DNA of 64,000 bases, from assembly GCA_002269645.1 (NCBI GenBank), contig NIVC01002028.1:50886-114885 (forward strand), written 5' to 3'. This document shows positions 6,857 to 62,664 of the stretch, piece by piece. Within the stretch, counting starts at the first letter, position 1. Every line of letters starts with the position of its first letter. Made by a program: the position numbers and the translations under genes. Under the pieces are notes generated by a model. It was not told the origin of the DNA, did no database searches, and worked only from the letters and a program-made list of their open reading frames with translations. Source of the stretch: Macrostomum lignano (Eukaryota).

Positions 6857-7664
<808 letters not shown>

Positions 7665-19051: not shown

Positions 19052-19157
19052 AAAAGCAATTCTTCAATAGATTGATTTTCCCACTAAGGATTAAATTGCT
19101 TGCTCCTAGGCTCAATTGGCTTGAAAAATGCTATAATATTTATTGATATCACAGTGT

Positions 19158-19831: not shown

Positions 19832-22051
19832 CTATGACTGCAAACACGGAAGCAAAGCAAAAACTTGCAATTTAATTCTCAGCTCCTGTTGCAGACGATT
19901 GAGAACTGGCTGACGCTGCAGTTTCTCCACGAATATCTGCACCAGGTTGGAGTCGTCGCAGAAGGCGGCGCACACTGCGAGTTCCTGAATGTCGGCGCTT
20001 TCACTCCAAGACACCTCTTGGAACCAGTGTCTAACGCTTACGTCATCGGGTGTCAGCAGAAGTCTCAGACTCTGCAGCAGTGCGTCGAAATTGACATAGA
20101 AGACCGCATTTTGAGTGTAGCTGTCAACGTCAAATGGAAAGTACTCTGCAATGACTTTAGGTAGAAATGGCAGCTCGGGGCGTTGATCAAATCGGAAGCA
20201 GAATTTCCATGCCGAGTCAACGCTAAGCAAATGCTGCCACACGTCTTCCTCTGTTGCTTCAATTGCTAAGTTCTCTGCAGACCAGGTTATTCCTCTGCTC
20301 ACGTTGTGCCGCCTACAGGCACTCAAAACCTTTTGTGCTCCATCTCTATCGTCGAATTTTAGACAGATCATCGCCCTGAGAGCCTCGCGAGCTGTCCGAG
20401 CGCAGTCCGGGAGCCTGTCAATCATTTGCATGAGCGTCTGTCGGGAATCTGGCGATTCAGATATCCGCTGCTGAGATAATTGAAGCAGTGACCATCCCAC
20501 TACATCATAGATCTCGTGATACTCAAGCTCTGGGTTTTCTGTCTGAATGGATTGAAGTCTCAGTTCCGGTAGAATTTGAAAAGGGTGAAAGTAAAATACG
20601 CCCGATTCGTTGACCGGTCGAAGCGTTCTTTGAAATTTCAGCAAGATCTGGGGCAGCTTTTCAATTACATCCCTCAAAACATTCGTAGCACTTTGAATTG
20701 TTTGTGTCATTGCACCGGAATGGCTCGGACCCAAGCCCTTCAAGTACAAACCAGCGTTGCACAGGAAAAAGTGCTCCATGATTCGACCATCCACATTGTC
20801 CACCGTGCAGTTTTGTCCGATGCTGTCAAGAAGCATCTGCAGCGATCGTCTTATTAGACTCACGAAATTCTGCGGTCTCCATTCCTCAGCCGGCGTCTCC
20901 TCCAACATTCTGAAAGTGATTGTCTTTGCGTGATATGCTTTTAGCCCCTCGAAATTGTAGCCGTCTTTGCGGCAAATTACTTTCTTAACCAAGTACTTCA
21001 GAGTGACGAATAGCTGGCCCTGTAACGTGCTGAGACCTCTTAGCAGCAGTTTCTCCAGGAAAGTTGTGCTGACACGAAGCTGCTTTCCCGCTTGTCTAGG
21101 TGGTGCCGCGTGCACCACGTGACAGGGTGACTTGCTGAGCTCGCCTTGAAGTGTATTCAGAACGGACGGAGAAATATTTGAGCTAGAGATTCGATGCGTC
21201 AGCAGCGGAGCGATTGGCGGATAGCAGCAGACGCGGCATGCGTCAACTTCATCTACTGCAGGTCTCAATGGTGTGCCACTTGAGGCCTTTGCCGGATTGG
21301 TTGCTGTTTTAACGATAAAGATTATTAAATGTCTTATAAGCTTTTATGAGATCATGCTTTCATATTGGAACTTTTTAACTGAACAATTGGATAACAAATT
21401 AGATTTAGTGAACTGTTTGGTACAATATGGTACTGGAGCAAAAGCACAGAGAGTCAGTCGCACAAACTGAATTATGTCTACTTGTGTGCTGATTAAAAAA
21501 CTCTGGCCTGGTTATTACTTCCTGTGCATGCGAGTTGGTACGAGTACCATAAGCATTGCTTTCACAGATTGGGCCTACACTGCGGCTTTAAGCGTGAATC
21601 CAGACTGAGCATAGTCCTGTTATATGAAAAGACCTCCGCGATAATGCCCATGACGCCGAGACCCTTATGATATTCCAATTTAATAAACAGCTGCTTACCA
21701 AAGCCCCCAATTCGAATATGACCATCCTTGCAGTCGACCAGCTCCTTTTCTTTTCGATCGCAGCATTGGCAACTACCTCTGATGTGGTAGAGTCGACCCT
21801 GAAACAGCTTCATCACGTCAATGTCAGACTCCGCGTCCGTTCTCCCGTCCGCTTTGGTCAGGCTGTTGCCCCAGCCCTCTGAGTAGCTGCCGACAATATA
21901 GATCCCTGGGAATGAGTCTCTCCTGCTTCGCAAAATTCCCTGCAATGCGTCGGCAACTGCAGCCTGCAAGGCGGCTCTGGCTTTAACAAATCCGGCTTTT
22001 GTAAGCGTCGATTGAAGCAGCAGACTGAGTTCCAATTCACTCGGCATCGAC
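19832..22051 (-). CDS. Mab-21/cGAS-like receptor (cGLR) nucleotidyltransferase, copy 1; exons 22051..21699 and 21303..19832; 606 aa from ATG 22047; intact C-terminus, ankyrin part lost
   Basis: VGSYSEG and ESDIDVM catalytic motifs, third acidic residue in VDEVDAC, LRVSTTFLEKLL, LKAYHAKTITF...EEW, MEHFF. Donor TTTG|GTAAGC (phase 1) joins acceptor AAACAG|CAACC in frame. Confidence 0.85.
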
Positions 22052-22811
22052 CTGAAGAAAATATTTTATTTATTGCATTCTGACCACATACTACTCGTAG
22101 CGTTTCCATTCCCCACTTTCCGTCCCGTTCAGTCTACTAATTTTGCTATTTGATTGTCTCTTTCATTTTATAAAGTTCATTTTTTGCATTAGTTGCTTTA
22201 ATGCGTCGGGCATCGTTTCATTCCTAAACTATAAAAAGGACAATGACGAGGAAGACAAAATTAACCGAGCTAAAAGATGAGAGAATGCATAGAGCGAGAT
22301 AGAAAGACATAATTGAGCTTTTGGAAAAATACAGATTAAAACCAGAGAGAAAAATGTCTAGAAGGAGAGAAATCATCGTACACTAAAAAGAGCACATTGT
22401 GCATAGATCACGCACAAGAGGGACAGAGGTTGGAGTTCTAGAACTGGAAATGTACACTTGCAACAGCAAACAGTGCGTATTCTCGGTCAGTTGGCGAAAT
22501 GATCGTGTACAAAGTAAAATTGCAAATAGAGAACTTTCTTCAACAGCCTAATGAGAATTTTTTTATGTTGCTTTTAGTAGCTCCAGTGCTTCTTCCGCCC
22601 TAGTACGAGCGTAATGCCCACGCATGCATGTTGACGGCAGCAATTACACTAAGCTGAAGCCGCGTAGCCAGCGAAACAACTAAATACTTCAACAAACCGC
22701 TTTGAGAAGCACTTCTAAATGCCATTTGGATTCGAAAATTAGGGGGCTCTATTTCATTTTATGTACAACGTCGCTCTATTTTAATATAAAAACTCATATT
22801 CGAACTCTTAC

Positions 22812-23263
22812 TCTGACTCTGACAAAGCCGCACGATCCTGATGAGTAAGTTGATGCTTAGCCTTTTCTGTCTCAGACTCAAGAAACGGTGATTCATATTG
22901 TGTCTGAATAGTTTGTTCCAGCAAGGCAGCAACTCGGTGATGTCCATTGACGCTTGCAATTAGAAGGGGAGTCTCACCAGTAACAGTTCTTGCTTCAACG
23001 TCAGCATGCGCCCTGACGAGGGACAACACCACGCCATAGTGACCGTTCTGCGACGCGATGTAGATTGGCGTGCAGCCTTCGGAGTCTTTGAGCTTGAGCG
23101 TTTATGAGTGAGTCAAATAGCTCATGGTAACCATTCTGTGACGCAATAAAGAGCGGAGACAGCCCCGTGTCAGTTTGCAGATTAACGCTTGCTTGCGCTT
23201 TTAGGAGCAAACTAAACACAGCATGAGGGCCTAGTTGCGACGCAATGTAAATGGGCGAGCCGC
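22812..23263 (-). pseudogene. 3' remnant of the ankyrin-repeat exon (copy 1)
   Basis: Matches the last about 3 ankyrin repeats of 53976-55870; 11-bp deletion (CATTGACGTCA) causes a frameshift; homology stops abruptly at 23263. Confidence 0.9.
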
Positions 23264-23430
23264 ATGTGCATTTCCGTTTGTTTTGCTTGTATAATGAAAG
23301 TTTTGATCATGATGCGAGACTTCTGAGAATATTTTACTCTATTCGCATCAAATGCATTGTTTGCATTTTTCGATCATGTTATTTAAAGCCAGAATTCACT
23401 TCACCAACACGAATTGTTATTCATTAGTTT
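23264..23430 (+). repeat. About 170-200-bp repeat, inverted partner at 32206-32403
   Basis: TGCATTTCCGTTTGTTTTG...CACCAACACGAATTGTTATTCATTAGTTT is the reverse complement of 32206-32403 apart from an indel of about 37 bp. Confidence 0.85.
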
Positions 23431-25638: not shown

Positions 25639-25640
25639 AG

Positions 25641-37592: not shown

Positions 37593-38102
37593 AAACCCGA
37601 GCCACTTCCAGATGCTCCTAGGCTCAATTGGCTTGGAAAATGCTATAATTTCGCACTTTAAAGTGTGAAATAATGACAAAATAGTGTCGAATAGTGACAT
37701 CAGTTCCGGGCATACAATGCGCTTACACTAAGGCTGCGAGCTAATAGCAAAAAAAATAGTTTATAGACTTTTGCCTATTGATTTCCAGTCTTTTAACTTT
37801 AATCTACTTCAAGTAGTGTCTAAAGCTCCTTTAGCAACGAAGAAAGTCGGAAAAATCTGTTTGTTAAAAACGGTTACTGGTTTACAATAGAACATCGGCA
37901 GGTAGTGCGGTGTCCGCTGCCAGCTATAGACCAACTCCAAATCTAAAATAATTAGATGCAACGTTTCAAAACTACAAAATCAATAGATTATACTATGACT
38001 GCACACACGGAAGCAAGGCAAAAACTTGCAATTTAGTTCTCAGCTCCTGTTGCAGACGATTGAGATGTGGCTGACGCTGCAGTTTCTCCACGAATATCTG
38101 CA

Positions 38103-40205
38103 TCAGGTTGGAGTCGTCGCAGAAGGCGGCGCACACTGCGAGTTCCTGAAATCCTCACTCCAAGACACCTCCTGGATCCAGTGTCTAACGCTTACGTCAT
38201 CGGGTGTCAGCAGAAGTCTCAGACTCTGCAGCAGTGCGTCGAAATTGACATAGAAGACCGCATTTTGAGTGTAGCTGTCAACGTCAAATGGAAAGTACTC
38301 TGCAATGACTTTAGGTAGAAATGGCAGCTCGGGGCGTTGATCAAATCGGAAGCAGAATTTCCATGCCGAGTCAACGCTAAGCAAATACTGCCACACGTCT
38401 TCCTCTGTTGCTTCAATTGCTAAGTTCTCCGCAGACCAGGTTATTCCTCTGCTCACGTTGTGCCGCCTACAGGCACTCAAAACCTTTTGTGCTCCATCTC
38501 TATCGTCGAACTTGAGACAGATCATCGCCCTAAGAGCCTCGCGAGCTGTCCGAGCGCAGTCCGGGAGCCTGTCAATCATTTGCATGAGCGTCTGTCGGGA
38601 ATCTGGCGATTCGGATATCCGCTGCTGAGATAATTGAAGCAGTGACCATCCCACTACATCATAGATCTCGTGATACTCAAGCTCTGGGTTTTCTGTCTGA
38701 ATGGATTGAAGTCTCAGTTCCGGTAGAATTTGAAAAGGGTGAAAGTAAAATACGCCCGATTCGTTGACCGGTCGAAGCGTTCTTTGAAATTTCAGCAAGA
38801 TCTGGGGCAGCTTTTCAATTACATCCCTCAAAACATTCGTAGCACTTTGAATTGTTTGTGTCATTGCACCGGAATGGCTCGGACCCAAGCCCTTCAAGTA
38901 CAAACCAGCGTTGCACAGGAAAAAGTGCTCCATGATTCGACCATCCACATTGTCCACCGTGCAGTTTTGTCCGATGCTGTCAAGAAGCATCTGCAGCGAT
39001 CGTCTTATTAGACTCACGAAATTCTGCGGTCTCCATTCCTCAGCCGGCGTCTCCTCCAACATTCTGAAAGTGATTGTCTTTGCGTGATATGCTTTTAGCC
39101 CCTCGAAATTGTAGCCGTCTTTGCGGCAAATTACTTTCTTAACCAAGTACTTCAGAGTGACGAATAGCTGGCCCTGTAACGTGCTGAGACCTCTTAGCAG
39201 CAGTTTCTCCAGGAAAGTTGTGCTGACACGAAGCTGCTTTCCCGCTTGTCTAGGTGGTGCCGCGTGCACCACGTGACAGGGTGACTTGCTGAGCTCGCCT
39301 TGAAGTGTATTCAGAACGGACGGAGAAATATTTGAGCTAGAGATTCGATGCGTCAGCAGCGGAGCGATTGGCGGATAGCAGCAGACGCGGCATGCGTCAA
39401 CTTCATCTACTGCAGGTCTCAATGGTGTGCCACTTGAGGCCTTTGCCGGATTGGTTGCTGTTTTAACGATAAAGATTATTAAATGTCTTATAAGCTTTTA
39501 TGAGATCATGCTTTCATATTGGAACTTTTTAACTGAACAATTGGATAACAAATTAGATTTAGTGAACTGTTTGGTACAATATGGTACTGGAGCAAAAGCA
39601 CAGAGAGTCAGTCGCACAAACTGAATTATGTCTACTTGTGTGCTGATTAAAAAACTCTGGCCTGGTTATTACTTCCTGTGCATGCGAGTTGGTACGAGTA
39701 CCATAAGCATTGCTTTCACAGATTGGGCCTACACTGCGGCTTTAAGCGTGAATCCAGACTGAGCATAGTCCTGTTATATGAAAAGACCTCCGCGATAATG
39801 CCCATGACGCCGAGACCCTTATGATATTCCAATTTAATAAACAGCTGCTTACCAAAGCCCCCAATTCGAATATGACCATCCTTGCAGTCGACCAGCTCCT
39901 TTTCTTTTCGATCGCAGCATTGGCAACTACCTCTGATGTGGTAGAGTCGACCCTGAAACAGCTTCATCACGTCAATGTCAGACTCCGCGTCCGTTCTCCC
40001 GTCCGCTTTGGTCAGGCTGTTGCCCCAGCCCTCTGAGTAGCTGCCGACAATATAGATCCCTGGGAATGAGTCTCTCCTGCTTCGCAAAATTCCCTGCAAT
40101 GCGTCGGCAACTGCAGCCTGCAAGGCGGCTCTGGCTTTAACAAATCCGGCTTTTGTAAGCGTCGATTGAAGCAGCAGACTGAGTTCCAATTCACTCGGCA
40201 TCGAC
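38103..40205 (-). CDS. cGLR copy 2; exons 40205..39853 and 39457..38103; C-terminal frameshift allele; ankyrin part lost
   Basis: Same exons and motifs as copy 1. A net 7-nt deletion near 38150 replaces the C-terminal about 55 aa with a 16-aa tail. Confidence 0.75.
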
Positions 40206-40965
40206 CTGAAGAAAATATTTTATTTATTGCATTCTGACCACATACTACTCGTAGCGTTTCCATTCCCCACTTTCCGTCCCGTTCAGTCTACTAATTTTGC
40301 TATTTGATTGTCTCTTTCATTTTATAAAGTTCATTTTTTGCATTAGTTGCTTTAATGCATCGGGCATCGTTTCATTCCTAAACTATAAAAAGGACAATGA
40401 CGAGGAAGACAAAATTAACCGAGCTAAAAGATGAGCGAATGCATAGAGCGAGATAGAAAGACATAATTGAGCTTTTGGAAAAATACAGATTAAAACCAGA
40501 GAGAAAAATGTCTAGAAGGAGAGAAATCATCGTACACTAAAAAGAGCACATTGTGCATAGATCACGCACAAGAGGGACAGAGGTTGGAGTTCCAGAACTG
40601 GAAATGTACACTTGCAACAGCAAACAGTGCGTATTCTCGGTCAGTTGGTGAAATGATCGTGTACAAATTAAAATTGCAAATAGAGAAATTTCTTCAACAG
40701 CCTAATGAGAATTTTTTTATGTTGCTTTTAGTAGCTCCAGTGCTTCTTCCGCCCTAGTACGAGCGTAATGCCCACGCATGCATGTTGACGGCAGCAATTA
40801 CACTAAGCTGAAGCCGCGTAGCCAGCGAAACAACTAAATACTTCAACAAACCGCTTTGAGAAGCACTTCTAAATGCCATTTGGATTCGAAAATTAGGGGG
40901 CTCTATTTCATTTTATGTACAACGTCGCTCTATTTTAATATAAAAACTCATATTCGAACTCTTAC

Positions 40966-41417
40966 TCTGACTCTGACAAAGCCGCACGATCCTGATGAGT
41001 AAGTTGATGCTTAGCCTTTTCTGTCTCAGACTCAAGAAACGGTGATTCATATTGTGTCTGAATAGTTTGTTCCAGCAAGGCAGCAACTCGGTGATGTCCA
41101 TTGACGCTTGCAATTAGAAGGGGAGTCTCACCAGTAACAGTTCTTGCTTCAACGTCAGCATGAGCTCTGACGAGGGACAACACCACGCCATAGTGACCGT
41201 TCTGCGACGCGATGTAGATTGGCGTGCAGCCTTCGGAGTCTTTGAGCTTGAGCGTTTATGAGTGAGTCAAATAGCTCATGGTAACCATTCTGTGACGCAA
41301 TAAAGAGCGGAGACAGCCCCGTGTCAGTTTGCAGATTAACGCTTGCTTGCGCTTTTAGGAGCAAACTAAACACAGCATGAGGGCCTAGTTGCGACGCAAT
41401 GTAAATGGGCGAGCCGC
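40966..41417 (-). pseudogene. 3' remnant of the ankyrin-repeat exon (copy 2)
   Basis: Same truncation point and 11-bp deletion as 22812-23263. Confidence 0.9.
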
Positions 41418-41585
41418 ATGTGCATTTCCGTTTGTTTTGCTTGTATAATGAAAGTTTTGATCATGATGCGAGACTTCTGAGAATATTTTACTCTATTCGC
41501 ATCAAATGCATTGTTTGCATTTTTCGATCATGTTATTTAAAGCCAGAATTCACTTCACCAACACGAATTGTTATTCATTAGTTTA
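41418..41585 (+). repeat. Inverted-repeat left arm, unit 2 (partner 47222-47419)
   Basis: Duplicate of 23264-23430. Confidence 0.85.
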
Positions 41586-46100: not shown

Positions 46101-46695
46101 ATATGCTCAGATATTATATGCTCAGATACCATATGCTCAGATACCATATGCTCAGATACCATATACTCAGATACCATATGCTCAGATACCATATGCTCAG
46201 ATACCATATGCTCAGATACCATATGCTCAGATGCCATATGCTCAGATACCATATGCTCAGATACCATATGCTCAGATACCATATGCTCAGATACCATATG
46301 CTCAGATACCATATGCTCAGATGCCATATGCTCAGATGCCATATGCTCAGATGCCATATGCTCAGATGCCATATGCTCAGATACCATATGCTCAGATACC
46401 ATATGCTCAGATACCATATGCTCAGATACCATATGCTCAGATACCATATGCTCAGATACCATATACTCAGATACCATATGCTCAGATACCATATGCTCAG
46501 ATACCATATGCTCAGATACCATATGCTCAGATACCATATGCTCAGATACCATATGCTCAGATACCATATGCTCAGATACCATATGCTCAGATACCATATG
46601 CTCAGATACCATATGCTCAGATACCATATGCTCAGATACCATATGCTCAGATACCATATGCTCGGATACCATATGCTCGGATACCATATGCTCAG
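43101..46695. repeat. 15-bp satellite, unit 2 (uninterrupted, about 3.6 kb)
   Basis: Period of 15 bp; no LTR insertion. Confidence 0.98.
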
Positions 46696-47221
46696 GGAGA
46701 AGAGAGATTTGCTCAGACGCCATCAGATACCCTGAGAGGAAATTTCCCCGTGACAATTTTTCTGCACCGGAGCGGAGCATCGCAGGCACACGAAATTAAA
46801 AAACACGGTCAAATCTTTTGTTGCGCACCTTTTCATCAATAGTCACGTCGAGATATTCAAAAATTCTGCCAGAAGTTCGGATTTTCGCGCGCTAGTGTAT
46901 TCAGTACACCCCTGTGCGCCAATCAGCACTGCGTCTCAACCTGGCCTCGCCGAGCCTCCAAGTTTCATCAGCACGTCGACCATGTGTCTGCATCAGCTCT
47001 GACTTTGTTGATCACTGGCCATAACTCAGGCAGAGCTTCTGGAGCTTCAACACTGGCACCAGGTGACAAAGTTGCTACCATGTTATGTAGTTATTTAAGT
47101 TTTTTATTAAAGTCCCTTTTTGGTAGCTCTACTGACAATTCTACTTTTTGAATGAGAAAAAATTGAGCAATAAATTAATTATACATGTCTCTCTCCGATA
47201 TCAAATTTTGAAACCGATATC

Positions 47222-47419
47222 AAACTAATGAATAACAATTAGTGTTGGTGAAGTGAAATCTGGCTTTAAATAACATGATCGAAAAATGCAAACAATGCAT
47301 TTGATGGGAATAGAGTAAAATATTCAACACAATTTAATTGTCTCTGATTGATGGAAAATGACAGAAGTCTCGCATCATGATTAAAACTTATATTATACAA
47401 AACAAACGAAAATGCACAC
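47222..47419 (-). repeat. Inverted-repeat right arm, unit 2
   Basis: Duplicate of 32206-32403. Confidence 0.85.
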
Positions 47420-47476
47420 ACATTGATCCTGATTTTAAATTACCTCTTTGATATTTAACGTGCACTAATAGTTAAT

Positions 47477-50400
47477 AGAGGCAGATTCAAGAACACTGAG
47501 GGGAGCGGAGAGGCAGATTCAAGGACACTGAGGGGAGCGGAGAGCCACATTCAAGGACACTGAGGGGAGCGGAGAGCCACATTCAAGGACACTGAGGGGA
47601 GCGGAGAGCCACATTCAAGGACACTGAGGGGAGCCGAGAGGCAGATTCAAGGACACTGAGGGGAGCGGAGAGCCACATTCAAGGACACTGAGGGGAGCGG
47701 AGAGGCAGATTCAAGGACACTGAGGGGAGCGGAGAGGCAGGTTCAAGGACACTGAGGGGAGCCGAGAGGCAGATTCAAGGACACTGAGGGGAGCGGAGAG
47801 GCAGATTCAAGGACACTGAGGGGAGCGGAGAGGCAGATTCAAGGACACTGAGGGGAGCCGAGAGGCAGATTCAAGGACACTGAGGGGAGCGGAGAGGCAG
47901 GTTCAAGGACACTGAGGGGAGCGGAGAGGCAGGTTCAAGGACACTGAGGGGAGCGGAGAGCCACATTCAAGGACACTGAGGGGAGCGGAGAGGCAGATTC
48001 AAGGACACTGAGGGGAGCGGAGAGGCAGGTTCAAGGACACTGAGGGGAGCGGAGAGGCAGTTCAAGGACACTGAGGGGAGCGGAGAGGCAGATTCAAGGA
48101 CACTGAGGGGAGCGGAGAGGCAGATTCAAGGACACTGAGGGGAGCGGAGAGGCAGGTTCAAGGACACTGAGGGGAGCGGAGAGCCACATTCAAGGACACT
48201 GAGGGGAGCGGAGAGGCAGATTCAAGGACACTGAGGGGAGCGGAGAGGTAGATTCAAGGACACTGAGGGGAGCGGAGAGCCACATTCAAGGACACTGAGG
48301 GGAGCCGAGAGGCAGATTCAAGGACACTGAGGGGAGCGGAGAGGCAGATTCAAGGACACTGAGGGGAGCGGAGAGGCAGATTCAAGGACACTGAGGGGAG
48401 CGGAGAGCCACATTCAAGGACACTGAGGGGAGCGGAGAGCCACATTCAAGGACACTGAGGGGAGCGGAGAGGCAGATTCAAGGACACTGAGGGGAGCGGA
48501 GAGGCAGATTCAAGGACACTGAGGGGAGCGAGAGGCAGATTCAAGGACACTGAGGGGAGCGGAGAGGCAGGTTCAAGGACACTGAGGGGAGCGGAGAGGC
48601 AGGTTCAAGGACACTGAGGGGAGCGGAGAGCCACATTCAAGGACACTGAGGGGAGCGGAGAGGCAGATTCAAGGACACTGAGGGGAGCGGAGAGGCAGGT
48701 TCAAGGACACTGAGGGGAGCGGAGAGGCAGGTTCAAGGACACTGAGGGGAGCGGAGAGGCAGATTCAAGGACACTGAGGGGAGCGGAGAGGCAGATTCAA
48801 GGACACTGAGGGGAGCGGAGAGGCAGGTTCAAGGACACTGAGGGGAGCGGAGAGGCAGGTTCAAGGACACTGAGGGGAGCGGAGAGGCAGGTTCAAGGAC
48901 ACTGAGGGGAGCGGAGAGGCAGATTCAAGGACACTGAGGGGAGCGGAGAGGCAGATTCAAGGACACTGAGGGGAGCGGAGAGGCAGATTCAAGGACACTG
49001 AGGGGAGCGGAGAGCCACATTCAAGGACACTGAGGGGAGCGGAGAGGCAGGTTCAAGGACACTGAGGGGAGCGGAGAGGCAGATTCAAGGACACTGAGGG
49101 GAGCGGAGAGGCAGATTCAAGGACACTGAGGGGAGCGAGAGGCAGATTCAAGGACACTGAGGGGAGCGGAGAGGCAGGTTCAAGGACACTGAGGGGAGCG
49201 GAGAGGCAGGTTCAAGGACACTGAGGGGAGCGGAGAGGCAGATTCAAGGACACTGAGGGGAGCGGAGAGGCAGATTCAAGGACACTGAGGGGAGCGGAGA
49301 GGCAGGTTCAAGGACACTGAGGGGAGCGGAGAGGCAGGTTCAAGGACACTGAGGGGAGCGGAGAGGCAGATTCAAGGACACTGAGGGGAGCGGAGAGGCA
49401 GATTCAAGGACACTGAGGGGAGCGGAGAGGCAGGTTCAAGGACACTGAGGGAAGCGGAGAGGCAGGTTCAAGGACACTGAGGGGAGCGGAGAGGCAGGTT
49501 CAAGGACACTGAGGGGAGCGGAGAGGCAGATTCAAGGACACTGAGGGGAGCGGAGAGGCAGGTTCAAGGACACTGAGGGGAGCGGAGAGGCAGATTCAAG
49601 GACACTGAGGGGAGCGGAGAGGCAGATTCAAGGACACTGAGGGGAGCGGAGAGGCAGATTCAAGGACACTGAGGGGAGCGGAGAGCCACATTCAAGGACA
49701 CTGAGGGGAGCGGAGAGGCAGATTCAAGGACACTGAGGGGAGCGGAGAGGCAGGTTCAAGGACACTGAGGGAAGCGGAGAGGCAGGTTCAAGGACACTGA
49801 GGGGAGCGGAGAGGCAGGTTCAAGGACACTGAGGGGAGCGGAGAGGCAGATTCAAGGACACTGAGGGGAGCGGAGAGGCAGGTTCAAGGACACTGAGGGG
49901 AGCGGAGAGGCAGATTCAAGGACACTGAGGGGAGCGGAGAGGCAGATTCAAGGACACTGAGGGGAGCGGAGAGGCAGATTCAAGGACACTGAGGGGAGCG
50001 GAGAGCCACATTCAAGGACACTGAGGGGAGCGGAGAGGCAGATTCAAGGACACTGAGGGGAGCGGAGAGGCAGATTCAAGGACACTGAGCGGAGCGAGAG
50101 GCAGATTCAAGGACACTGAGGGGAGCGGAGAGGCAGGTTCAAGGACACTGAGGGGAGCGGAGAGGCAGGTTCAAGGACACTGAGGGGAGCGGAGAGGCAG
50201 ATTCAAGGACACTGAGGGGAGCGGAGAGGCAGATTCAAGGACACTGAGGGGAGCGGAGAGGCAGGTTCAAGGACACTGAGGGGAGCGGAGAGGCAGGTTC
50301 AAGGACACTGAGGGGAGCGGAGAGGCAGATTCAAGGACACTGAGGGGAGCGGAGAGCCACATTCAAGGACACTGAGGGGAGCGGAGAGGCAGGTTCAAGG

Positions 50401-50603
50401 ACACTGAGGGGAGCGGAGAGGCAGGTTCAAGGACACTGAGGGGAGCGGAGAGGCAGGTTCAAGGACACTGAGGGGAGCGGAGAGGCAGATTCAAGGACAC
50501 TGAGGGGAGCCGAGAGGCAGATTCAAGGACACTGAGGGGAGCGGAGAGGCAGGTTCAAGGACACTGAGGGGAGCGGAGAGGCAGGTTCAAGGACACTGAG
50601 GGG
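47477..50603. repeat. 32-bp satellite, unit 2 (about 3.1 kb)
   Basis: Same monomer as 32461-37592. Confidence 0.98.
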
Positions 50604-51113
50604 AAACCCGAGCCACTTCCAGATGCTCCTAGGCTCAATTGGCTTGGAAAATGCTATAATTTCGCACTTTAAAGTGTGAAATAATGACAAAATAGTGTCG
50701 AATAGTGACATCAGTTCCGGGCATACAATGCGCTTACACTAAGGCTGCGAGCTAATAGCAAAAAAAATAGTTTATAGACTTTTGCCTATTGATTTCCAGT
50801 CTTTTAACTTTAATCTACTTCAAGTAGTGTCTAAAGCTCCTTTAGCAACGAAGAAAGTCGGAAAAATCTGTTTGTTAAAAACGGTTACTGGTTTACAATA
50901 GAACATCGGCAGGTAGTGCGGTGTCCGCTGCCAGCTATAGACCAACTCCAAATCTAAAATAATTAGATGCAACGTTTCAAAACTACAAAATCAATAGATT
51001 ATACTATGACTGCACACACGGAAGCAAGGCAAAAACTTGCAATTTAGTTCTCAGCTCCTGTTGCAGACGATTGAGATGTGGCTGACGCTGCAGTTTCTCC
51101 ACGAATATCTGCA

Positions 51114-54100
51114 TCAGGTTGGAGTCGTCGCAGAAGGCGGCGCACACTGCGAGTTCCTGAAATCCTCACTCCAAGACACCTCCTGGATCCAGTGTCTAAC
51201 GCTTACGTCATCGGGTGTCAGCAGAAGTCTCAGACTCTGCAGCAGTGCGTCGAAATTGACATAGAAGACCGCATTTTGAGTGTAGCTGTCAACGTCAAAT
51301 GGAAAGTACTCTGCAATGACTTTAGGTAGAAATGGCAGCTCGGGGCGTTGATCAAATCGGAAGCAGAATTTCCATGCCGAGTCAACGCTAAGCAAATACT
51401 GCCACACGTCTTCCTCTGTTGCTTCAATTGCTAAGTTCTCCGCAGACCAGGTTATTCCTCTGCTCACGTTGTGCCGCCTACAGGCACTCAAAACCTTTTG
51501 TGCTCCATCTCTATCGTCGAACTTGAGACAGATCATCGCCCTAAGAGCCTCGCGAGCTGTCCGAGCGCAGTCCGGGAGCCTGTCAATCATTTGCATGAGC
51601 GTCTGTCGGGAATCTGGCGATTCGGATATCCGCTGCTGAGATAATTGAAGCAGTGACCATCCCACTACATCATAGATCTCGTGATACTCAAGCTCTGGGT
51701 TTTCTGTCTGAATGGATTGAAGTCTCAGTTCCGGTAGAATTTGAAAAGGGTGAAAGTAAAATACGCCCGATTCGTTGACCGGTCGAAGCGTTCTTTGAAA
51801 TTTCAGCAAGATCTGGGGCAGCTTTTCAATTACATCCCTCAAAACATTCGTAGCACTTTGAATTGTTTGTGTCATTGCACCGGAATGGCTCGGACCCAAG
51901 CCCTTCAAGTACAAACCAGCGTTGCACAGGAAAAAGTGCTCCATGATTCGACCATCCACATTGTCCACCGTGCAGTTTTGTCCGATGCTGTCAAGAAGCA
52001 TCTGCAGCGATCGTCTTATTAGACTCACGAAATTCTGCGGTCTCCATTCCTCAGCCGGCGTCTCCTCCAACATTCTGAAAGTGATTGTCTTTGCGTGATA
52101 TGCTTTTAGCCCCTCGAAATTGTAGCCGTCTTTGCGGCAAATTACTTTCTTAACCAAGTACTTCAGAGTGACGAATAGCTGGCCCTGTAACGTGCTGAGA
52201 CCTCTTAGCAGCAGTTTCTCCAGGAAAGTTGTGCTGACACGAAGCTGCTTTCCCGCTTGTCTAGGTGGTGCCGCGTGCACCACGTGACAGGGTGACTTGC
52301 TGAGCTCGCCTTGAAGTGTATTCAGAACGGACGGAGAAATATTTGAGCTAGAGATTCGATGCGTCAGCAGCGGAGCGATTGGCGGATAGCAGCAGACGCG
52401 GCATGCGTCAACTTCATCTACTGCAGGTCTCAATGGTGTGCCACTTGAGGCCTTTGCCGGATTGGTTGCTGTTTTAACGATAAAGATTATTAAATGTCTT
52501 ATAAGCTTTTATGAGATCATGCTTTCATATTGGAACTTTTTAACTGAACAATTGGATAACAAATTAGATTTAGTGAACTGTTTGGTACAATATGGTACTG
52601 GAGCAAAAGCACAGAGAGTCAGTCGCACAAACTGAATTATGTCTACTTGTGTGCTGATTAAAAAACTCTGGCCTGGTTATTACTTCCTGTGCATGCGAGT
52701 TGGTACGAGTACCATAAGCATTGCTTTCACAGATTGGGCCTACACTGCGGCTTTAAGCGTGAATCCAGACTGAGCATAGTCCTGTTATATGAAAAGACCT
52801 CCGCGATAATGCCCATGACGCCGAGACCCTTATGATATTCCAATTTAATAAACAGCTGCTTACCAAAGCCCCCAATTCGAATATGACCATCCTTGCAGTC
52901 GACCAGCTCCTTTTCTTTTCGATCGCAGCATTGGCAACTACCTCTGATGTGGTAGAGTCGACCCTGAAACAGCTTCATCACGTCAATGTCAGACTCCGCG
53001 TCCGTTCTCCCGTCCGCTTTGGTCAGGCTGTTGCCCCAGCCCTCTGAGTAGCTGCCGACAATATAGATCCCTGGGAATGAGTCTCTCCTGCTTCGCAAAA
53101 TTCCCTGCAATGCGTCGGCAACTGCAGCCTGCAAGGCGGCTCTGGCTTTAACAAATCCGGCTTTTGTAAGCGTCGATTGAAGCAGCAGACTGAGTTCCAA
53201 TTCACTCGGCATCGACCTGAAGAAAATATTTTATTTATTGCATTCTGACCACATACTACTCGTAGCGTTTCCATTCCCCACTTTCCGTCCCGTTCAGTCT
53301 ACTAATTTTGCTATTTGATTGTCTCTTTCATTTTATAAAGTTCATTTTTTGCATTAGTTGCTTTAATGCATCGGGCATCGTTTCATTCCTAAACTATAAA
53401 AAGGACAATGACGAGGAAGACAAAATTAACCGAGCTAAAAGATGAGCGAATGCATAGAGCGAGATAGAAAGACATAATTGAGCTTTTGGAAAAATACAGA
53501 TTAAAACCAGAGAGAAAAATGTCTAGAAGGAGAGAAATCATCGTACACTAAAAAGAGCACATTGTGCATAGATCACGCACAAGAGGGACAGAGGTTGGAG
53601 TTCTAGAACTGGAAATGTACACTTGCAACAGCAAACAGTGCGTATTCTCGGTCAGTTGGCGAAATGATCGTGTACAAAGTAAAATTGCAAATAGAGAACT
53701 TTCTTCAACAGCCTAATGAGAATTTTTTTATGTTGCTTTTAGTAGCTCCAGTGCTTCTTCCGCCCTAGTACGAGCGTAATGCCCACGCATGCATGTTGAC
53801 GGCAGCAATTACACTAAGCTGAAGCCGCGTAGCCAGCGAAACAACTAAATACTTCAACAAACCGCTTTGAGAAGCACTTCTAAATGCCATTTGGATTCGA
53901 AAATTAGGGGCTCTATTTCATTTTATGTACAACGTCGCTCTATTTTAATATAAAAACTCAAATTCGAACTCTTACTCTGACTCTGACAAAGCCGCACGAT
54001 CCTGATGAGTAAGTTGATGCTTAGCCTTTTCTGTCTCAGACTCAAGAAACGGTGATTCATATTGTGTCTGAATAGTTTGTTCCAGCAAGGCAGCAACTCG

Positions 54101-55870
54101 GTGATGTCCATTGACGCTTGCAATTAGAAGGGGAGTCTCACCAGTAACAGTTCTTGCTTCAACGTCAGCATGAGCTCTGACGAGGGACAACACCACGCCA
54201 TAGTGACCGTTCTGCGACGCGATGTAGATTGGCGTGCAGCCTTCGGAGTCTTTGACATTGACGTCAGCTTGAGCGTCTATGAGAGAGTCAACCAGCTCAT
54301 GGTAACCATTCTGTGACGCAATAAAGAGCGGAGACAGCCCCGTGTCAGTTTGCAGATTAACACTTGCTTGCGCTTTTAGGAGCAAACTAAACACAGCATG
54401 ACGGCCTAGTTGCGACGCAATGTAAATGGGCGAGCCGCCATTTATTTGCTGAATATCAACATCTGCTTGTGCTTTGAGAAGTGCAGCCACCACCTGGTGG
54501 AACCCTTTCTGTGAGGCAATGTACAAAGGCGACCCTCCAAGGTTGTCCTGTTGATTGATGTCAGCTTGCGCTTTGATGAGCAGGTCAATCACTTGATGAT
54601 GACCGTTGCAGGAGGCGATCAAAAGTGGGGACTCCCCAGATGCTCTCGGAGCGTCAACGTCTGCCTGTGCTTTGATAAGCGAGGCTACCACTCTCTGGTG
54701 TCCATTCTGACACGCAATATACATTGGCGAGGCCCCAAGACATGTTTGTTGGTTGACTTCCGCTTTCGATTTAATAAGCAGCTTGACAATGTCATTGTGT
54801 CCGTTCTGCGATGCGATATAGAGAGGCGAGTCACCTTTTCTGTTTCGAAAATTTACGTCTGCGTTCGCTTTGATAAGGCAGTCCACAATTTGACGGTGAC
54901 CGCGCAGAGAAGCAACGAAAAGAGGTGACTCGCCCGATTTGGTATGGCAATTGACGTCGGCTCCGGCTTGGATGAGTTGGCTCACCGTTTCAAGCCCGGG
55001 ATTGAAAGATGCAGCGTAAATAGGCGTCTCGCCCATTGTCGTTCCCAAATTCACATCGGCCATTGCTCCAATCAGCAGTTGCATAGTTTGACGGTGGCCA
55101 TTCTGAGAGGCCAAATATAGTGGCGATTCACCAGTACTCAGCTGAAGGTCAACTTCAGCTTGCGCTTTAATGAGTAGGGTCATTATTTCTCTGCGATCAA
55201 AGTACGAGGCGATAGATAGAGGTGTTGCCCCAGTGTTGGCTTGCAAGTTGACGTCTGCCTGCGCTTGCAGCAGCAACCGCGCTACTTTCAAGTGGCCATT
55301 CTGAACAGCGCTGTACAGTGGTGTGGCGCCTTCGTTAATCTGACAGTCAACGTTGACGTCCTGCTTGAGGAGCAATTCAACAACCCGGTGGTGACCTTTT
55401 TGCGACGCGATGTACAGCGGTGTCGCGCCATTTTTTATTGCGTGATTGACATCGGCTTTGGCGCTGATCAGCGATTTCACTGCCTTGTAATGATTAGCCT
55501 GAGCTGCAATGTAGAGCGCTGATGTGCCGGAATTTGTTACCAGATTTACGTTTGCTCTCGCTTCTACTAAAAGATCAACGACTTGATGATGGCCCTGCAT
55601 CGATGCCAGGTAGACTGGAGTTCGTCCGTCCTGATCCTGATAATTGACGTCGGCTTTCGATGCGATTAGCAGCTCAGTAACAGTCTCCTGTCCAGTGATG
55701 CAGGCAGCCTGCAGTGGCGAGAACGGGACACCGGATGCTGATATGAGCAGCTTGTCGGCCGTCATTCCTCTTGTCAAGAGATTCTCCACGAATGCCTTGT
55801 CTCCCTGTGCAATGGCAAGAATAATTTTCCGATCTGCTGGGAGATCCGAGCCACTTCCAGACGCCTGCAT
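51114..55870 (-). CDS. Ankyrin-repeat / Mab-21 (cGAS-like) fusion protein; complement(join(51114..52468,52864..53216,53976..55870)), about 1200 aa
   Basis: 17 ankyrin repeats (G-x-[TS]-P-L...GH...LL...ADVN). Donor TCAGA|GTAAGA (phase 2) and acceptor TTCTTCAG|G TCG ATG restore GAG TCG ATG in frame with the NTase exon. Exon lengths 1895+353+1355=3603 nt. A further 5' exon cannot be excluded. Confidence 0.78.
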
Positions 55871-56486
55871 TCTTTGGCTTTCAATCTTCTTTCGCAATGT
55901 CTACTAAGACGGCAGTAAAAGTTAAGGCAAAATTTGCTTAAAAAGGAAAGCTATTTCTGGTTAATAATTTTTTCTTTGAAGCAGCAAAATTTGGGCGTTT
56001 ATTAAAGCTTGAAATGTACAGCGTTATTGTACGTATTGGACGTACATACAGAATGTACAGAATTAGTGTATTTCACAAATATCCAGGCTATGCTACTGTC
56101 AGTAGAGAAGAATATTTTATTTTTTATTGTGTACGTCTTGGCTTTCAATAACCCAAATGATGAACGGAATCTAATTTCGAATATTTTTTACTCGAAGCAG
56201 AACCGAAATTCCCACTGCTCAATATCTGGCTAATGTTTCCTTAAAATTCTTTTTATCAATGTGTTTACTAACTTTTTACAGGGAAATTTCTGTGTTGCTT
56301 CAAATATGAATAGCGAGCCTGTTCTGGATTAAGAGTTCGAAAGGATACGACTCAGGTCTAACTCATAGCATACATGATGAAGCAACTTTATAAGTAAAGG
56401 GCCAATGAATATCAGTGAATATGATACAATGAGTTAGGAATGATTAAAAATAAGTTTAGAGCATGTAATGTGAGCTTAAGCAACCG

Positions 56487-59400
56487 TCAATAAGTTGCAT
56501 TCCTCCTGGCCCAGTCCGGAAAACCGTTGATGCCGAAAATTGCCGGCGCATAGCAGAGAGAGGCCCCGGCCGCCAAAGCGTTCGAGAGCAGCCACATGAT
56601 GCAGCCGGTGCGAAGCTGCAACGAATAAATTCACGATTGTTTTACCTTGCCATAGTTAATATATGGATGCTTTCAATGCAACAGAGACGCAGTGTTATCC
56701 AAAGCCTTACCATATCCCACGGCCGCAGGTAGCCCCTCGAATAGACCAGTATGTTTGCTGGTGTCGAGATCGGCAAAATGAATGCAAAAGAGCTGGAAGC
56801 GGCGCTAGACAGCATGAGCTGGAACGGGTGTCGCTGCAGTCGCTCGCTCTAAAACATTTCGGTGACTGAATGTCACTGAAAGTCACTGAAAGTCACTGAA
56901 TGTCACTGAATGTCACTGAATATTACTGAAAGTCACTGAAAGTCACTGAAAGTCACTGAAAGTCACTGAAAGTCACTGAAAGTCACTGAAAGTCACTGAA
57001 AGTCACTGAAAGTCACTGAAAGTCACTGAAAGTCACTGAAAGTCACTGAAAGTCACTGAAAGTCACTGAAAGTCACTGAAAGTCACTGAAAGTCACTGAA
57101 AGTCACTGAAAGTCACTGAAAGTCACTGAAAGTCACTGAAAGTCACTGAAAGTCACTGAAAGTCACTGAAAGTCACTGAATGTCACTGAATGTCATTGAG
57201 TGTCATTTAATGTCACTGAATGTCACTGAATGTCACTGAATATTACTGAAAGTCACTGAAAGTCACTGAATGTGGTTGATTATTGATAAATCGAGTTAAT
57301 AGCAAAAACCGAATCTCTAGGCGGACGCGGACTCACCAGACTGGCCAAGATGGGCAGCAGGATCGTGGCAGCTGTACCGTTAGAGGTCAACTCGGTGAGC
57401 AGGGCGGAGCACCAGCAGATGATGAAGATGAGAGCCGGGGCTGGCACGGACTTCAACGCAACCAGCTGGCTGCCGATCCAGTCGGACAGGCCGGACACCT
57501 GAGTAGTGCGGAAGATCGAGTATCGCTTGATTTGCGCATTTACTAGAGCACGGATCAGGTGAAACGCTGGGCCAAAGAAGGGGTGATTATACCATGGGAC
57601 TCAAACTTAAACTGTTTGCTTGTCGAGACATTATGAGGAGAAACATTTGCCATGTCAGTAAGTTCACAACTAGAGGCTTTACAAATGAACTCACTCTGGA
57701 CAGGTCGGCCAGTGCGAAGCCGGCACCCAGCATGAGTACAATCTGCCAGGCCACCCGCTTCTGCACCAGGTCCCAGCTCAGCAGCCGACTCGGCTTGGTA
57801 CGCCATTGCCGACAATCTTCTCCAGCTGCATCAGCATCGGCTTTAAATTCAAAGTCAGACTGCTGCTGACTGCAGTGCTCCACTGTCGTCTCATTGGAAA
57901 CTGGTTTTCTTCTTACAGCCTTGAACAGGTTCGCGAACGGATTCCGCGAGGGTAGCAGGAAGAGCAGCAAGACGGCCAGCACGGCCGGCTGCGCGTCACT
58001 CATCAGACTGACTGGTGCTTCATCCTCAGAATCCGAGGTTGGCGCTTTCATAAACAACGACGACCAACCCGGAGCTCCAGGCTGTCGCGAGATCCACAGG
58101 ATGATAGTGAGGCCAAAAATAGCCAGCACGCTTGCCTCAGCGTAGCTCAGCGGACCGAGCTGCTTGTACTGCCGCTGGAGAGCTGCGCGGGTCAGTCGAG
58201 CGTCGGCGATTGCGACCGAGTCGCCGGCTTTGGCCAAGCCGCTGAAATTGCAGTGTATGCGAAGTGATAAGGAAAAGCATCACAATTACATTACCAACAG
58301 CTAATGATAGTTGAAGTAATTATCAGCCCGGCAAAAGTAGCCTAATCGAAAAAAATGCATTTTTTATTTTTTGCGCAGCTTGGGCCCCAAAAGTAAAAGT
58401 AAAATTAAACGCTGCGATGTTCCTTAAGTGTCTACAAGACCAAAGAATTCCGCATTTGTAGCGACCAATAACAGGAGAGCCTTACGTCTAATCTTGCCAA
58501 AAACTCACTTTTAGTTTTGCCTGCGTTTTACACGCTTTCCTAGAAGAAAACCTAAAATTCCTTGGGTTCTGGACACGTTTTTAAACTATTTTGGTATTAA
58601 ATTTTTGAATGGCTTTTCTATGCAAAACCTATGATTAAGGTTGCTTGCTATAGTTTCAAAATTTTTCCCAATTTAAGAGATCCTACTTACAATTCCTACC
58701 CAAGATGCTAAATATCTTGTACCGACGTGTCTGATAGTATCATATGTCTGCTTTCTCAGTACGGCGATCGCTTAAACCACTTAAAAGACAGTTAGACGTT
58801 AAACGGATAAGGATGCAGAATTATATTGCTGGGAGGAGTTTGGAGTACATGTGTTGATTGTTGCTGATTATGAAGAGAGCCATGGAAGACTCGTGACTAT
58901 AAATTACTTTCAATTACGAGATGAATATCTTTACATCATGTCTACGTATAATCAAAGTTTGAGTCTGTATGATCCTTATGATAAAGGATTTTTGAGATTG
59001 AGTCTCACAGATTAACAATCATCATCTGGTCTGGTTCGTCTAGCTTCCAGTTTCTTTGATAACGCGTTAAAATAAATATCGGATTCCAACTGAGTGGCTA
59101 TAAACTATTAATACTAGGATTTAAACCTGCTGAATTAAAATCCAGATTTAGAAGAGAAGGCTCAATTTTGATAATACGTAAGACACGTAAAAGAGGCACA
59201 AAAGTCGTCCTTCTCTCACCGAAAGCCAAGAAAGCTGATCTGAAGCCAGACCCAGGTCAGCAAAAGGCCTACGGCGCCCAATGGCAAGGCAAACAGCATC
59301 CAACTGCAGTAGTTGAGCCCCGTGTTGGATCCGTAGTACTCTTGAACAATCCCATTCAAGATAACGTTCGGAGCCGTTCCCGTCAGAGTGACGACGCCAC

Positions 59401-60541
59401 CAAAAACAGAACCGTAGGAGACGCCCAGCAGCAGCATCCGGCACGTGCTAGCAAACTCTGCGTTGCTCTCCTCAGCCAGGTATTCTTTCAAAGGCATCGG
59501 ACGGATTATTCCATCGTTATTATCGTCATTGTCGTCTTCGATAGAGTCTTTCTTTGGATCCTCATCTTCCACATCGTCTGGTGGCAGCGGTGGGATTTGT
59601 ATTTTCACCGCTGGGCTTGACAGATCACCGTCAGGATTCTCTCCGGAGTTTTCATCAGAAACGGTGGATACGGAGGATGAAAGGACACTGGGTGCTGTTT
59701 CTGACACCACCGACTCTTTGCGACGTTTTTGCCGCATATGCTGACACCGCAGCTCGGATAGCACAGCTTCCACAATAGGCAGCATCATAGCTACCGTGGC
59801 CGTGTTCGAGATCCACATCGAAAGAACCCAGGCCGGAGCAAGCAGTCCGAAGAGGAGCCTGGAGTATGCGAATTATGCTCAAGCTTGTTCAAAACAGCCA
59901 TGTTTTAAAATACATCCCTTATCACATACGAGCAAGTACTGTAGGTGCTTACCACCTGGGCTGGACGCCGCAGAGTAAAAGAACTTTCAAGGCAATCCTC
60001 TTGTGCAAATCCCAGGCCTCGATGGATACAGCCATAATTAGACCGCCGAGAAAAAGCATATTCGAGTCCTGCAAAATGTGTGCACAAGTTGCTCTTCAAT
60101 GGGTACCTTGGATTACCTTAAACTCTTGAAGTTGAATAATGTGTTATTTAAACAAAAACTTACCTTGAAGTAGCTGGGACATATTTCACTACTGGACATA
60201 ATGCCGAGCAGAGGTGACAGCACCACAGGCAGCAAGGCGGTCACTCCTAGAGGGACCACTTCAAAGTTCCAGTAGAATGACATTAGTAGAATGATGTAGG
60301 CTGCCTTGGATACCTGTTGGATAAACAGGTTGATAGCAATTTAAAGCATATTGCAGCACAACCCAATCGGTCTAAAGCTTGATTCACTTACCAGACTGTC
60401 AAAGCAAAGAAGCAACGGAAGCAAAGCCAGCGGCACAAGGATCAGCACCACAGTCGCCCGATGCTTCAGCAACAGCTTGCCAAATCCTCGGAGCAGTTCG
60501 ACAACTCTGAGGAAAACTGCGATTGCTTGCGAGCTATTCAT
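56487..60541 (-). CDS. SLC13-family Na+/dicarboxylate-citrate-sulfate cotransporter (INDY-like); 8 exons: 60541..60392, 60313..60164, 60068..59953, 59858..59220, 58241..57695, 57498..57337, 56848..56711, 56615..56487; about 676 aa
   Basis: Motifs VTALLP, LFLGG, SMWISNT, TGTAPN (SNT-P motif 1), [23 protein letters not shown]. All introns are GT-AG with consistent phases; total 2031 nt. Confidence 0.92.
56862..57272. repeat. 10-bp tandem repeat (AGTCACTGAA)n in an SLC13 intron
   Basis: About 40 units. Confidence 0.97.
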
Positions 60542-61096
60542 GATGAAGGGAGTCTGATGATAAGTTTCTTGATTGTTCATCCCACCGACTGGCTTATATT
60601 TATAGCCCAGAAATGCTGCTCAGACCCATTTCACATTAAATTCCTTGGCTACTCTATCGACTCGCCAGCTAAAAAAAGAAGAAATTAAGAGAAAGGGTAA
60701 TCTCAGGACATGGTGACTGAGACTCACGCATTTGTTTTCCGGCCGACAATGACTGTGCTGCCTCATTTTCAGAAAATAAGAGAACAGTGTAGCCAAGCGG
60801 AAAATACATTAAGTTTGTATGCTTACAATGTTTGATTGAGTATAGTTTTGAAGCAATTTTTTTTTCTCATTGACTTGTGCATCCAATGCATCGAGTTACA
60901 AAGTGCAGACTGCATGTCACTTTGCGGAGTCAGTTTACACATTGAACTCCTTAAAATGCTTGATTTTCAGTTCATTTGGTTGAGAAATATTGATTTTTCA
61001 TTGCCTAGCTTCACTTAGTGTCTCGGGTTTTTTTAACCTTTAATTCTTCAAGATGATTTATTCAGGCTAAATTGCAAGATATGAATGTTATTTGCC

Positions 61097-62215: not shown

Positions 62216-62664
62216 GCAGTCATAGGTATCATTATGAGCAAATTAATTTATGGGAAAAAGCAGATAAGTATCACTTTATTTTTCGTTGTAATGCACGTTA
62301 GATGAGATAGAAAATAAGTTATACTCAAGCGAATTAGTCAGTGCACCAACGGACTCTATGATATTTAAATTATACCGAATGCATAGAGCAGAAATGGGCC
62401 AGCTGTTTGAGTACAATAGGAACTCCACGAATTCCTACTGTATGAGTCATGCCTTACTGAATACATCGTTCTTGTGAAAGTAATAAAGTATGCTTGAAGC
62501 TTAAACGTATGTGAAAATTCACAAATTTCGCCAGCTATCTTCAATGATTCCCATGCAAAACTATCTCTCAGACTTCCGTCTGCTTCATTAATATTGAATT
62601 TATCTTCGGCAATGACTTCTTTAGACTCAGCTGTCAGTTACCGGTGGCGCTATCAGATGTTGTA

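Follow-up and report, generated by a model that had tools for sequence, protein, structure and literature searches.

A probable ankyrin-repeat and Mab-21 fusion gene of the cGAS-like receptor family at a tandemly repeated locus of Macrostomum lignano

Does an ankyrin open reading frame (ORF) that stops just ahead of a Mab-21-type exon end there, or is it spliced into an enzyme of the cGAS-like receptor (cGLR) family? The question is raised by a 64-kb window (the whole stretch of DNA analysed, 64,000 nucleotides (nt)) of contig NIVC01002028.1 from the flatworm Macrostomum lignano, in which a 641-amino-acid (aa) ankyrin ORF on the minus strand (53972..55897) lies at the head of a series of tandem copies of Mab-21 exons. 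We consider it likely, with a probability of about 0.8, that the head copy (copy C, 51114-55870, minus strand) is a three-exon M. lignano gene and a member of the species' expanded ankyrin-repeat cGLR family. The product spliced from its own three exons is 1200 aa long and consists of 18 ankyrin repeats that form an N-terminal solenoid, a nucleotidyltransferase (NTase) of the Mab-21/cGAS type and an alpha/beta domain of ~225-260 aa that is restricted to the M. lignano ANK-Mab21 family. This kind of fusion is already known, its architecture, its occurrence in M. lignano and its close paralogues all being on record in the literature and in GenBank; since the locus is annotated in GenBank and its kind has been published for M. 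lignano, the gene itself counts as already known.

Splicing of copy C

The ankyrin part runs for 632 aa from the first ATG of the ORF (55870) to the TAA, the ORF ending ...GCT TTG TCA GAG TCA GAG TAA. The sequence-only reading of this DNA had proposed that the apparent stop lies inside a splice donor and that the next acceptor has the matching phase 2, and both proposals hold. The exon end is GAGTCAGA|GTAAGA, with 53976 as its final base; exon 1 has 1895 nt, which gives a phase-2 intron, and the acceptor ttttcttcag|G begins exon 2 at 53216. GA and G are joined to GAG across the junction, and the frame continues E-S-M-P-S-E-L-E-L into a 161-aa ORF that holds GSYSEGWG and ESDIDVM. A stop within the donor carries no weight by itself, because a phase-2 GTRA donor always produces NNG TAA or NNG TGA. 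A second intron, which the sequence-only reading had not located, was placed at 52863-52469 by homologue alignment. The exon 2 donor is GGC TTT G|GTAAGC (52864), phase 1 as in the M. lignano paralogues, and exon 3 starts at 52468 after aaaacag|. The resulting junction, ...GHIRIGGF|ATNPAKASSGTPLRPAVDEVDA..., agrees with GF|ATNPAKPFRGSSLKPAVD of the closest relative (GF|ATNPAK...LRPAVD in the homologue alignment), and the reading frame stops at TGA 51116-51114. The exons and introns are as follows.

53976..55870, minus strand: exon 1, 631 codons plus 2 nt, with 18 ankyrin units and a 22-aa acidic linker; donor GA|GTAAGA
53217..53975, minus strand: intron 1, 759 nt, phase 2, GTAAGA...TTCTTCAG; divides the ankyrin module from the enzyme module
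52864..53216, minus strand: exon 2, 353 nt, N-terminal helices and first part of the nucleotidyltransferase core (G54 S55, D76 x D78)
52469..52863, minus strand: intron 2, 395 nt, phase 1, GTAAGC...AAAACAG
51114..52468, minus strand: exon 3, third Asp D135, Mab-21 helix bundle and C-terminal alpha/beta domain

Two other boundaries were tried and rejected. The exon-3 acceptor at 52420 is in frame, yet the homologue alignment ruled it out and led to 52468; carrying exon 2 on to the end of its ORF (...GKQLFIKLEYHKG...) was ruled out by the paralogues, which splice directly after G[FY]. In an exact look-up neither the ankyrin ORF nor the 161-aa exon-2 ORF was on record.

A search with the Mab-21 part found 34 relatives, every one from M. 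lignano, and many of them are proteins of 820-942 aa with ankyrin and Mab-21_C Pfam domains. Introns were compared at five paralogue loci, L001-L005 (P0009, P0007, P0002, P0026, P0018), with 34-52% protein identity to the query. All five have a phase-2 intron with a GT[AG]AG donor three codons before an S-[DE]-x-E-L-S-x-x-L helix, in the same codon as copy C. The second intron lies directly after G[FY] in 5/5, and its phase is 1 in the four loci in which it could be read (L001-L003, L005). The matching phases, together with the same-codon intron in five paralogues, put the ankyrin and Mab-21 ORFs in one gene. The fused model spans the junction within a single high-scoring segment pair (HSP) in alignments with M. 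lignano proteins of 1117-1378 aa, the fusion relatives overall measuring 1100-1400 aa. Full-length collinear alignments at 43-49% identity are given by the BOX15_Mlig paralogues PAA61028.1 (1146 aa), PAA88786.1 (1168 aa) and PAA54193.1 (1378 aa). Their loci are distinct from copy C, and the BOX15_Mlig relatives are old paralogues rather than alleles, since identity is at most 57%. Copy C thus has the collinear ankyrin, Mab-21 and C-terminal domains of the M. lignano ANK-Mab21 family and equal positions of both introns. The earlier claim of one gene from ankyrin and Mab-21 exons is supported by the paralogue introns, by the single-HSP collinearity and by a public coding sequence (CDS) of 1233 aa that starts at the same ATG. 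A profile search of a library of 1.84 billion proteins gave 652,917 matches, mostly ankyrin proteins, because the alignment retained about 260 ankyrin columns; it was uninformative on distant cGLR relatives and served only to extract the long M. lignano fusions.

Domains of the predicted product

The ankyrin array occupies residues 16-609 in a continuous 33-aa register. Eighteen units are counted in this register, and the figure of 17 repeats given by the sequence-only reading is replaced accordingly. The tandem 33-residue units are those of an ankyrin-repeat protein, and Pfam reports Ank_2 at E=4e-139 and Ank at E=2e-107.

A cGLR has been defined by an active-site motif, two-lobe homology and a predicted fold (Li et al. 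2023, PMC9980059), the motif being h[QT]GS X8-20 [DE]h[DE]h X50-90 h[DE]h (PMC9980059). With residues of the Mab-21 part counted from the S right after the exon 1/2 junction, copy C carries this active site as IVGS-X20-DIDV-X53-VDE, with V at the [QT] position as the one exception. The catalytic set consists of G54 and S55, of the conserved pair D76 and D78 within E-S-D-I-D, and of D135 in AVDEV as the third acid, so that the GS, E-x-D-x-D and third acidic residue noted from the sequence are all present. Across 14 family members (35-58% identity, four constructs of Li et al. included) G54, S55, D76 and D78 are invariant and D135 is nearly so. A full acidic triad and G-S, present and conserved, set the protein apart from non-catalytic proteins of the MAB21L1 type.

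At the sequence level the kinship to cGAS is found in one part of the enzyme. Searched as a single sequence against the Protein Data Bank (PDB), the protein matched cGAS only at E about 0.05. A profile of the family core matched cGAS (E=4e-8) and Sp-cGLR1 (E=1.4e-7), both within the helix bundle. HMMER aligned no PDB chain to the NTase core; when the family profile was compared by hhalign with a single cGLR sequence from a coral, a weak match of 47 columns appeared at the HVV...RLSFS motif.

The enzyme part was modelled with AlphaFold2 (AF2) from the family alignment, with a predicted local distance difference test score (pLDDT) of 84 and a predicted template modelling score (pTM) of 0.87. The top 50 Foldseek matches in the PDB are all cGAS, Cv-cGLR1 (8gjw), Sp-cGLR1 (8gjy), MAB21L1 or MB21D2, with probability 1.0 and E down to 4e-8; the target-normalised template modelling (TM) score of these matches is mostly 0.45-0.6. 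In the model the catalytic residues lie where strand 1 ends and along the strands 76-90 and 133-142, a placement that fits the Pol-beta NTase topology. The predicted structure thus supports a cGAS/cGLR fold with intact catalytic residues, the fold named in the cGLR definition, and bears out the Mab-21/cGAS fold that had been proposed for the NTase region, cGAS and two cGLRs being the best matches.

Residues H89, H111, C143 and H179, conserved specifically in the family, are encoded in exons 2-3 (Mab-part residues ~89-179). They fall in the patterns H..G.C.C...NGH, RLC.YPP and SPCH.VHAA. From these patterns, the four residues might form a structural metal site; the set is not the vertebrate cGAS zinc ribbon.

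The C-terminal extension, put at about 250 aa by the sequence-only reading, is indeed present; it measures about 224 aa in copy C and 263 aa in copy A, where it is intact. The copy A version was modelled with confidence as an alpha/beta fold (pLDDT 86), and no match to it was found in the PDB by sequence search or Foldseek (best E=0.4) or in Pfam.

The calculated isoelectric points (pI) of the ankyrin part, the enzyme core and the C-terminal domain are 6.0, 9.1 and 4.8. As a rough guide, Li et al. 2023 associate a pI above 8.5 with nucleic-acid sensors (PMC9980059). The core value of 9.1 would weakly favour a nucleic-acid ligand, and so speaks mildly against the earlier suggestion that the array detects a ligand other than nucleic acid. 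In a working enzyme, ligand binding would cause the synthesis of a nucleotide second messenger, which would act on a downstream receptor in M. lignano, signalling through STING being an assumption; the ankyrin array may bind other proteins and so serve in recruitment, oligomerisation or autoinhibition.

Tandem copies, public annotation and rival readings

The Mab-21 exons occur in the window as three copies in tandem (A, B and C), a feature missed by the sequence-only reading, as were the broken ankyrin exons of A and B, the frameshift near the 3' end of copy C and the ATG just past its exon-2 acceptor. Copy C is the head copy and the sole one with a full ankyrin exon, and copy A is the sole one with an intact C-terminal tail.

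19832..23276, minus strand: copy A, ankyrin remnant truncated and frameshifted as in B; tail ...QELAVCAAFCDD...LQS intact, stop at 19832
38103..41430, minus strand: copy B, exons 2 and 3 100% identical to C including the 7-nt deletion; last ~160 ankyrin codons only
53216 (C), 40205 (B) and 22051 (A), minus strand: equivalent exon-2 acceptors
51155..51166, minus strand: site of the 7-nt deletion (between 51161 and 51160) in the DNA alignment of the three copies; common to B and C

In copies A and B only the last ~160 ankyrin codons are kept, with a breakpoint equivalent to 54438 of C, an 11-nt deletion and no ATG; with the exon truncated in this way, neither copy can make the fusion alone. Over 1656 coding nt no difference separates B from C. 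Between A and C there are 6 synonymous and 2 nonsynonymous changes, small counts that fit purifying selection. The 7-nt deletion, recognised against copy A and the family consensus, swaps about 58 conserved tail residues for 19 out-of-frame residues. Past the deletion an alternative frame of copy C reads QELAVCAAFCDD..., as does the family consensus, and the conserved tail in copy A reads ...ADIQELAVCAAFCDD...LQS; the stop of copy C at 51116-51114 is real but is a result of the deletion. The triplication may be real or may in part be redundancy of the Mlig_3_7 assembly, in which 180 Mb lie in blocks duplicated at 95% identity or more (PMC5730564).

The public gene table of NIVC01002028.1 (GCA_002269645.1, Mlig_3_7) was mapped via window 46487-64000, which is 100.000% identical over the 17.5 kb compared. 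This match rules out a different Macrostomum species as the source, which had been considered because the best hits had only 56% identity. The CDS in the table begins at window 55870, the same ATG, and its product has ankyrin matches. The product of 1233 aa exceeds the ankyrin ORF alone (632 aa) by about 600 aa, so the annotators' model also splices past the TAA. This CDS stretches past window 46487, so it must draw on a further copy downstream or on some other sequence. A path from C 55870-54142 through the copy B remnant 41230-40966 to exons 2 and 3 of B yields exactly 1233 aa (1200 plus one 33-aa repeat). A brute-force enumeration of single extra junctions found 70 paths that reach 1233 aa, and the length therefore decides nothing. 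Neither the Mab-21 part nor the ankyrin exon, used as a query, retrieved the locus's own 1233-aa protein.

Several observations weigh against copy C as a working three-exon cGLR gene, and they are taken here together with the rival readings that they feed. An ATG lies 4 nt past the exon-2 acceptor (MPSELEL...) in 3/3 copies (53212, 40201 and 22047) and in 0/5 of the paralogues examined, which makes a Mab-21-only product possible. The locus would then have two products: the ankyrin ORF ending at TAA 53972, and a Mab-21 enzyme begun at ATG 53212 after spliced-leader trans-splicing at 53216, in an operon-like arrangement or as an isoform beside the fusion. Copies A and B, which lack a usable ankyrin exon yet have intact Mab-21 frames and the same acceptor, would suit such an arrangement, as would the ATTAAA and AATAAA hexamers in the 759-nt spacer. 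It would also suit the general picture in M. lignano, where trans-splicing affects 38.8% of the genes and multi-gene precursors make up about 7% of the assembled transcripts (PMC5730564). However, the phases of exons 1 and 2 match, the intron position is kept in the five paralogues that have no ATG near the acceptor, and the public product of 1233 aa starts from the ankyrin ATG. Moreover, the BOX15 gene models were built from RNA-seq (RNA sequencing) assemblies cut at experimentally mapped trans-splice and poly(A) sites (PMC5730564), yet the paralogues stayed fused, and we regard two separate products as distinctly improbable. Also to be weighed are the public model, with its 1233 rather than 1200 aa and its reach beyond 46487, and the 7-nt frameshift of B and C only, which strips copy C of the conserved tail and leaves its own functional state uncertain as far as can be read from the sequence. 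Both would suit a reading in which the Mab-21 exons of copy C are unused, or the copy is decaying, and the mRNA carries the C ankyrin exon spliced onto exons of a copy further downstream, or one in which the triplication is partly an assembly artefact, for which the duplicated 180 Mb of Mlig_3_7 at 95% identity or more (PMC5730564) give some ground. The route through the B remnant would use a donor CTG|GTGAGA at 54142 and gives 1233 aa; if the C ankyrin exon is joined to the exons of copy A, the product has 1239 aa when the junctions are standard and 1233 aa when they are shifted. Against this stand the 70 paths that make the length non-decisive, the coding identity of B and C, from either of which the same protein would result, and the unusual step of splicing across 13-32 kb past good nearer acceptors. 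The missing tail is matched in the family, where P0003, P0004 and P0018 end before it naturally. We take a transcript of this kind, or the artefact, to be somewhat unlikely.

The remaining points bear on whether the domain is an enzyme at all. V precedes G-S where the published motif has Q or T; the Mab-21 NTase core model PF03281 had no match to the copy C protein in the Pfam search; and Mab-21_C (PF20266), for the single sequence, reached 22.5 bits (E=1.3e-4), short of its cut-off of 24.1. The 15 active enzymes characterised by Li et al. 2023 include none of the five M. lignano constructs (PMC9980059), and planarian flatworms are without STING (PMC13563047). The Mab-21 domain could on these grounds be a non-catalytic scaffold, like the developmental MAB21L1, with no nucleotide signalling. 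The published M. lignano constructs have M, L, F or T at the [QT] position (Li et al. 2023, PMC9980059), so that the census did not enforce it strictly, and Li et al. 2023 curated the M. lignano clade as having complete active sites (PMC9980059). The near-invariance of G-S, D-x-D and the third Asp at 35-58% identity would be hard to explain without catalysis, and the modelled catalytic residues are arranged as in Pol-beta NTases; a scaffold is thus considered unlikely. Taking copy C again as a three-exon cGLR gene, a bolder extension, which we hold to be very doubtful, is that Macrostomum kept and expanded an ankyrin-cGLR family unlike cGAS while most flatworms lost cGLR signalling, with the ankyrin solenoid and/or the C-terminal domain as sensor or output module, a non-STING receptor, and a tandem locus that would yield long, ankyrin-fused isoforms beside short, trans-spliced ones with the Mab-21 part only.

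If active, the copy C protein would be a member of the sole cGLR lineage retained in flatworms and a handle on the role of ankyrin arrays in cGAS-like fusions, be it ligand sensing, autoinhibition or recruitment. The contribution is one annotated locus and not a new concept, and serves as an example of a spliced fusion recovered from raw ORFs. The tandem triplication and the frameshift complicate the use of copy C. The interest that remains lies in a C-terminal domain of orphan fold, in what the ankyrin array does, in the receptor and in the messy tandem locus.

The surroundings of the gene in the window are as follows.

56487-59818, minus strand: SLC13 (Na/sulfate symporter) gene, annotated 261-aa product; exon 98% identical to an M. 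lignano protein
8410-11026, plus strand: DEG/ENaC amiloride-sensitive sodium channel, two ORFs (N- and C-terminal halves), Pfam ASC E=4e-11 and 3e-22
13024-13488, minus strand: ORF with Mos1/mariner-type helix-turn-helix domains
26152-27396: 414-aa ORF with retrotransposon gag and zinc-knuckle domains
25101-25639 and 28867-29405: direct repeats of 539 bp, 100% identical, flanking the 414-aa ORF
32461-37593 and 47477-50604: purine-rich 32-mer minisatellite, AGAGGCAGATTCAAGGACACTGAGGGGAGCGG, 161 and 98 copies, downstream of B and C
29405-31679 and 43101-46695: 15-mer satellite, ATATGCTCAGATACC, up to 240 copies, following the 32-mer arrays
3484-3897, 6858-7664, 19156-19398, 56865-57270, 61530-62218 and 62668-64000: six more tandem arrays

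On the same strand, only ~617 bp lie between the end of the annotated 261-aa SLC13 product and the cGLR ATG downstream of it, a spacing that suggests a transcriptional unit common to the two genes; additional symporter exons at 59216-59818 fall outside the 261-aa model. The DEG/ENaC gene is an unrelated neighbour, and the ORF at 13024-13488 is probably a fragment of a transposase. The segment 25101-29405, between the 15-mer satellite and the region upstream of copy A, looks like a short and very recent long-terminal-repeat (LTR) element. Copies A, B and C are separated by the 32-mer and 15-mer arrays, which account for odd blocks of GC content and skew and generate spurious ORFs of more than 1200 aa. 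The units of the six further arrays are a 16-mer, (AACT)n of about 200 copies, a 33-mer, a 10-mer, a second 32-mer and a 9-mer, and the window as a whole is unusually rich in satellites.

Comparison with known cGLR systems

Some cGLRs carry ankyrin or tetratricopeptide (TPR) modules (Li et al. 2023, PMC9980059). Ankyrin-cGLR fusions, those of M. lignano included, are thus already in Li et al. 2023, and the novelty implied by the sequence-only reading does not stand. Most platyhelminths are without cGLRs according to that study (PMC9980059), and neither cGAS nor STING was found in the planarian S. mediterranea (PMC13563047); Macrostomum is not listed in the portion of Table S5 of Li et al. 2023 that was available (PMC9980059).

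The nearest known systems are the M. lignano cGLRs of Li et al. 2023, PAA86972.1, PAA45980.1, PAA68676.1, PAA57558.1 and PAA93208.1 (Tables S2 and S3), which are from the same species and the same clade. In Table S2, Ank_2 domains at the N terminus are recorded for M. lignano accessions (PMC9980059), and these include at least 3/5 of the proteins named (PAA86972, PAA45980, PAA68676); for the screen five M. lignano cGLRs were cloned without the ankyrin part (#89-93; PMC9980059). Four of the constructs were aligned with copy C and show 35-38% identity and the same invariant residues. Shared motifs are GS[FY][AS]EGWG, SD[IV]D[VF], RVST.F[LQ]E, TLQGQ and GLK.YHAKT, and the C-terminal extension is alike; copy C differs in its longer array of 18 repeats and its frameshifted tail.

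A cGLR core is likewise joined to ankyrin repeats in the coral Stylophora pistillata (Li et al. 2023, Fig. 4C). The coral belongs to a different phylum; its fusions are likened to copy C by domain layout and may have an independent origin.

The fold of copy C is shared with human, mouse and pig cGAS, Cv-cGLR1 (8gjw) and Sp-cGLR1 (8gjy), at probability 1.0 and target-normalised TM 0.5-0.6. The GS / D-x-D / D arrangement is common to these structures and copy C, and in the helix bundle the homology is seen in the sequence as well (E=4e-8); identity is only 12-17%, with no sequence-level match in the NTase core. Unlike them, copy C adds the N-terminal array of 18 repeats and a C-terminal domain without a PDB match. 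MAB21L1 and MB21D2 (5eom, 7lt1) have the same fold as copy C, at Foldseek ranks 34-50. For Mab21L1/2/3 no functional active site is predicted (Li et al. 2023, Fig. 1A legend), whereas copy C retains the full acidic triad.

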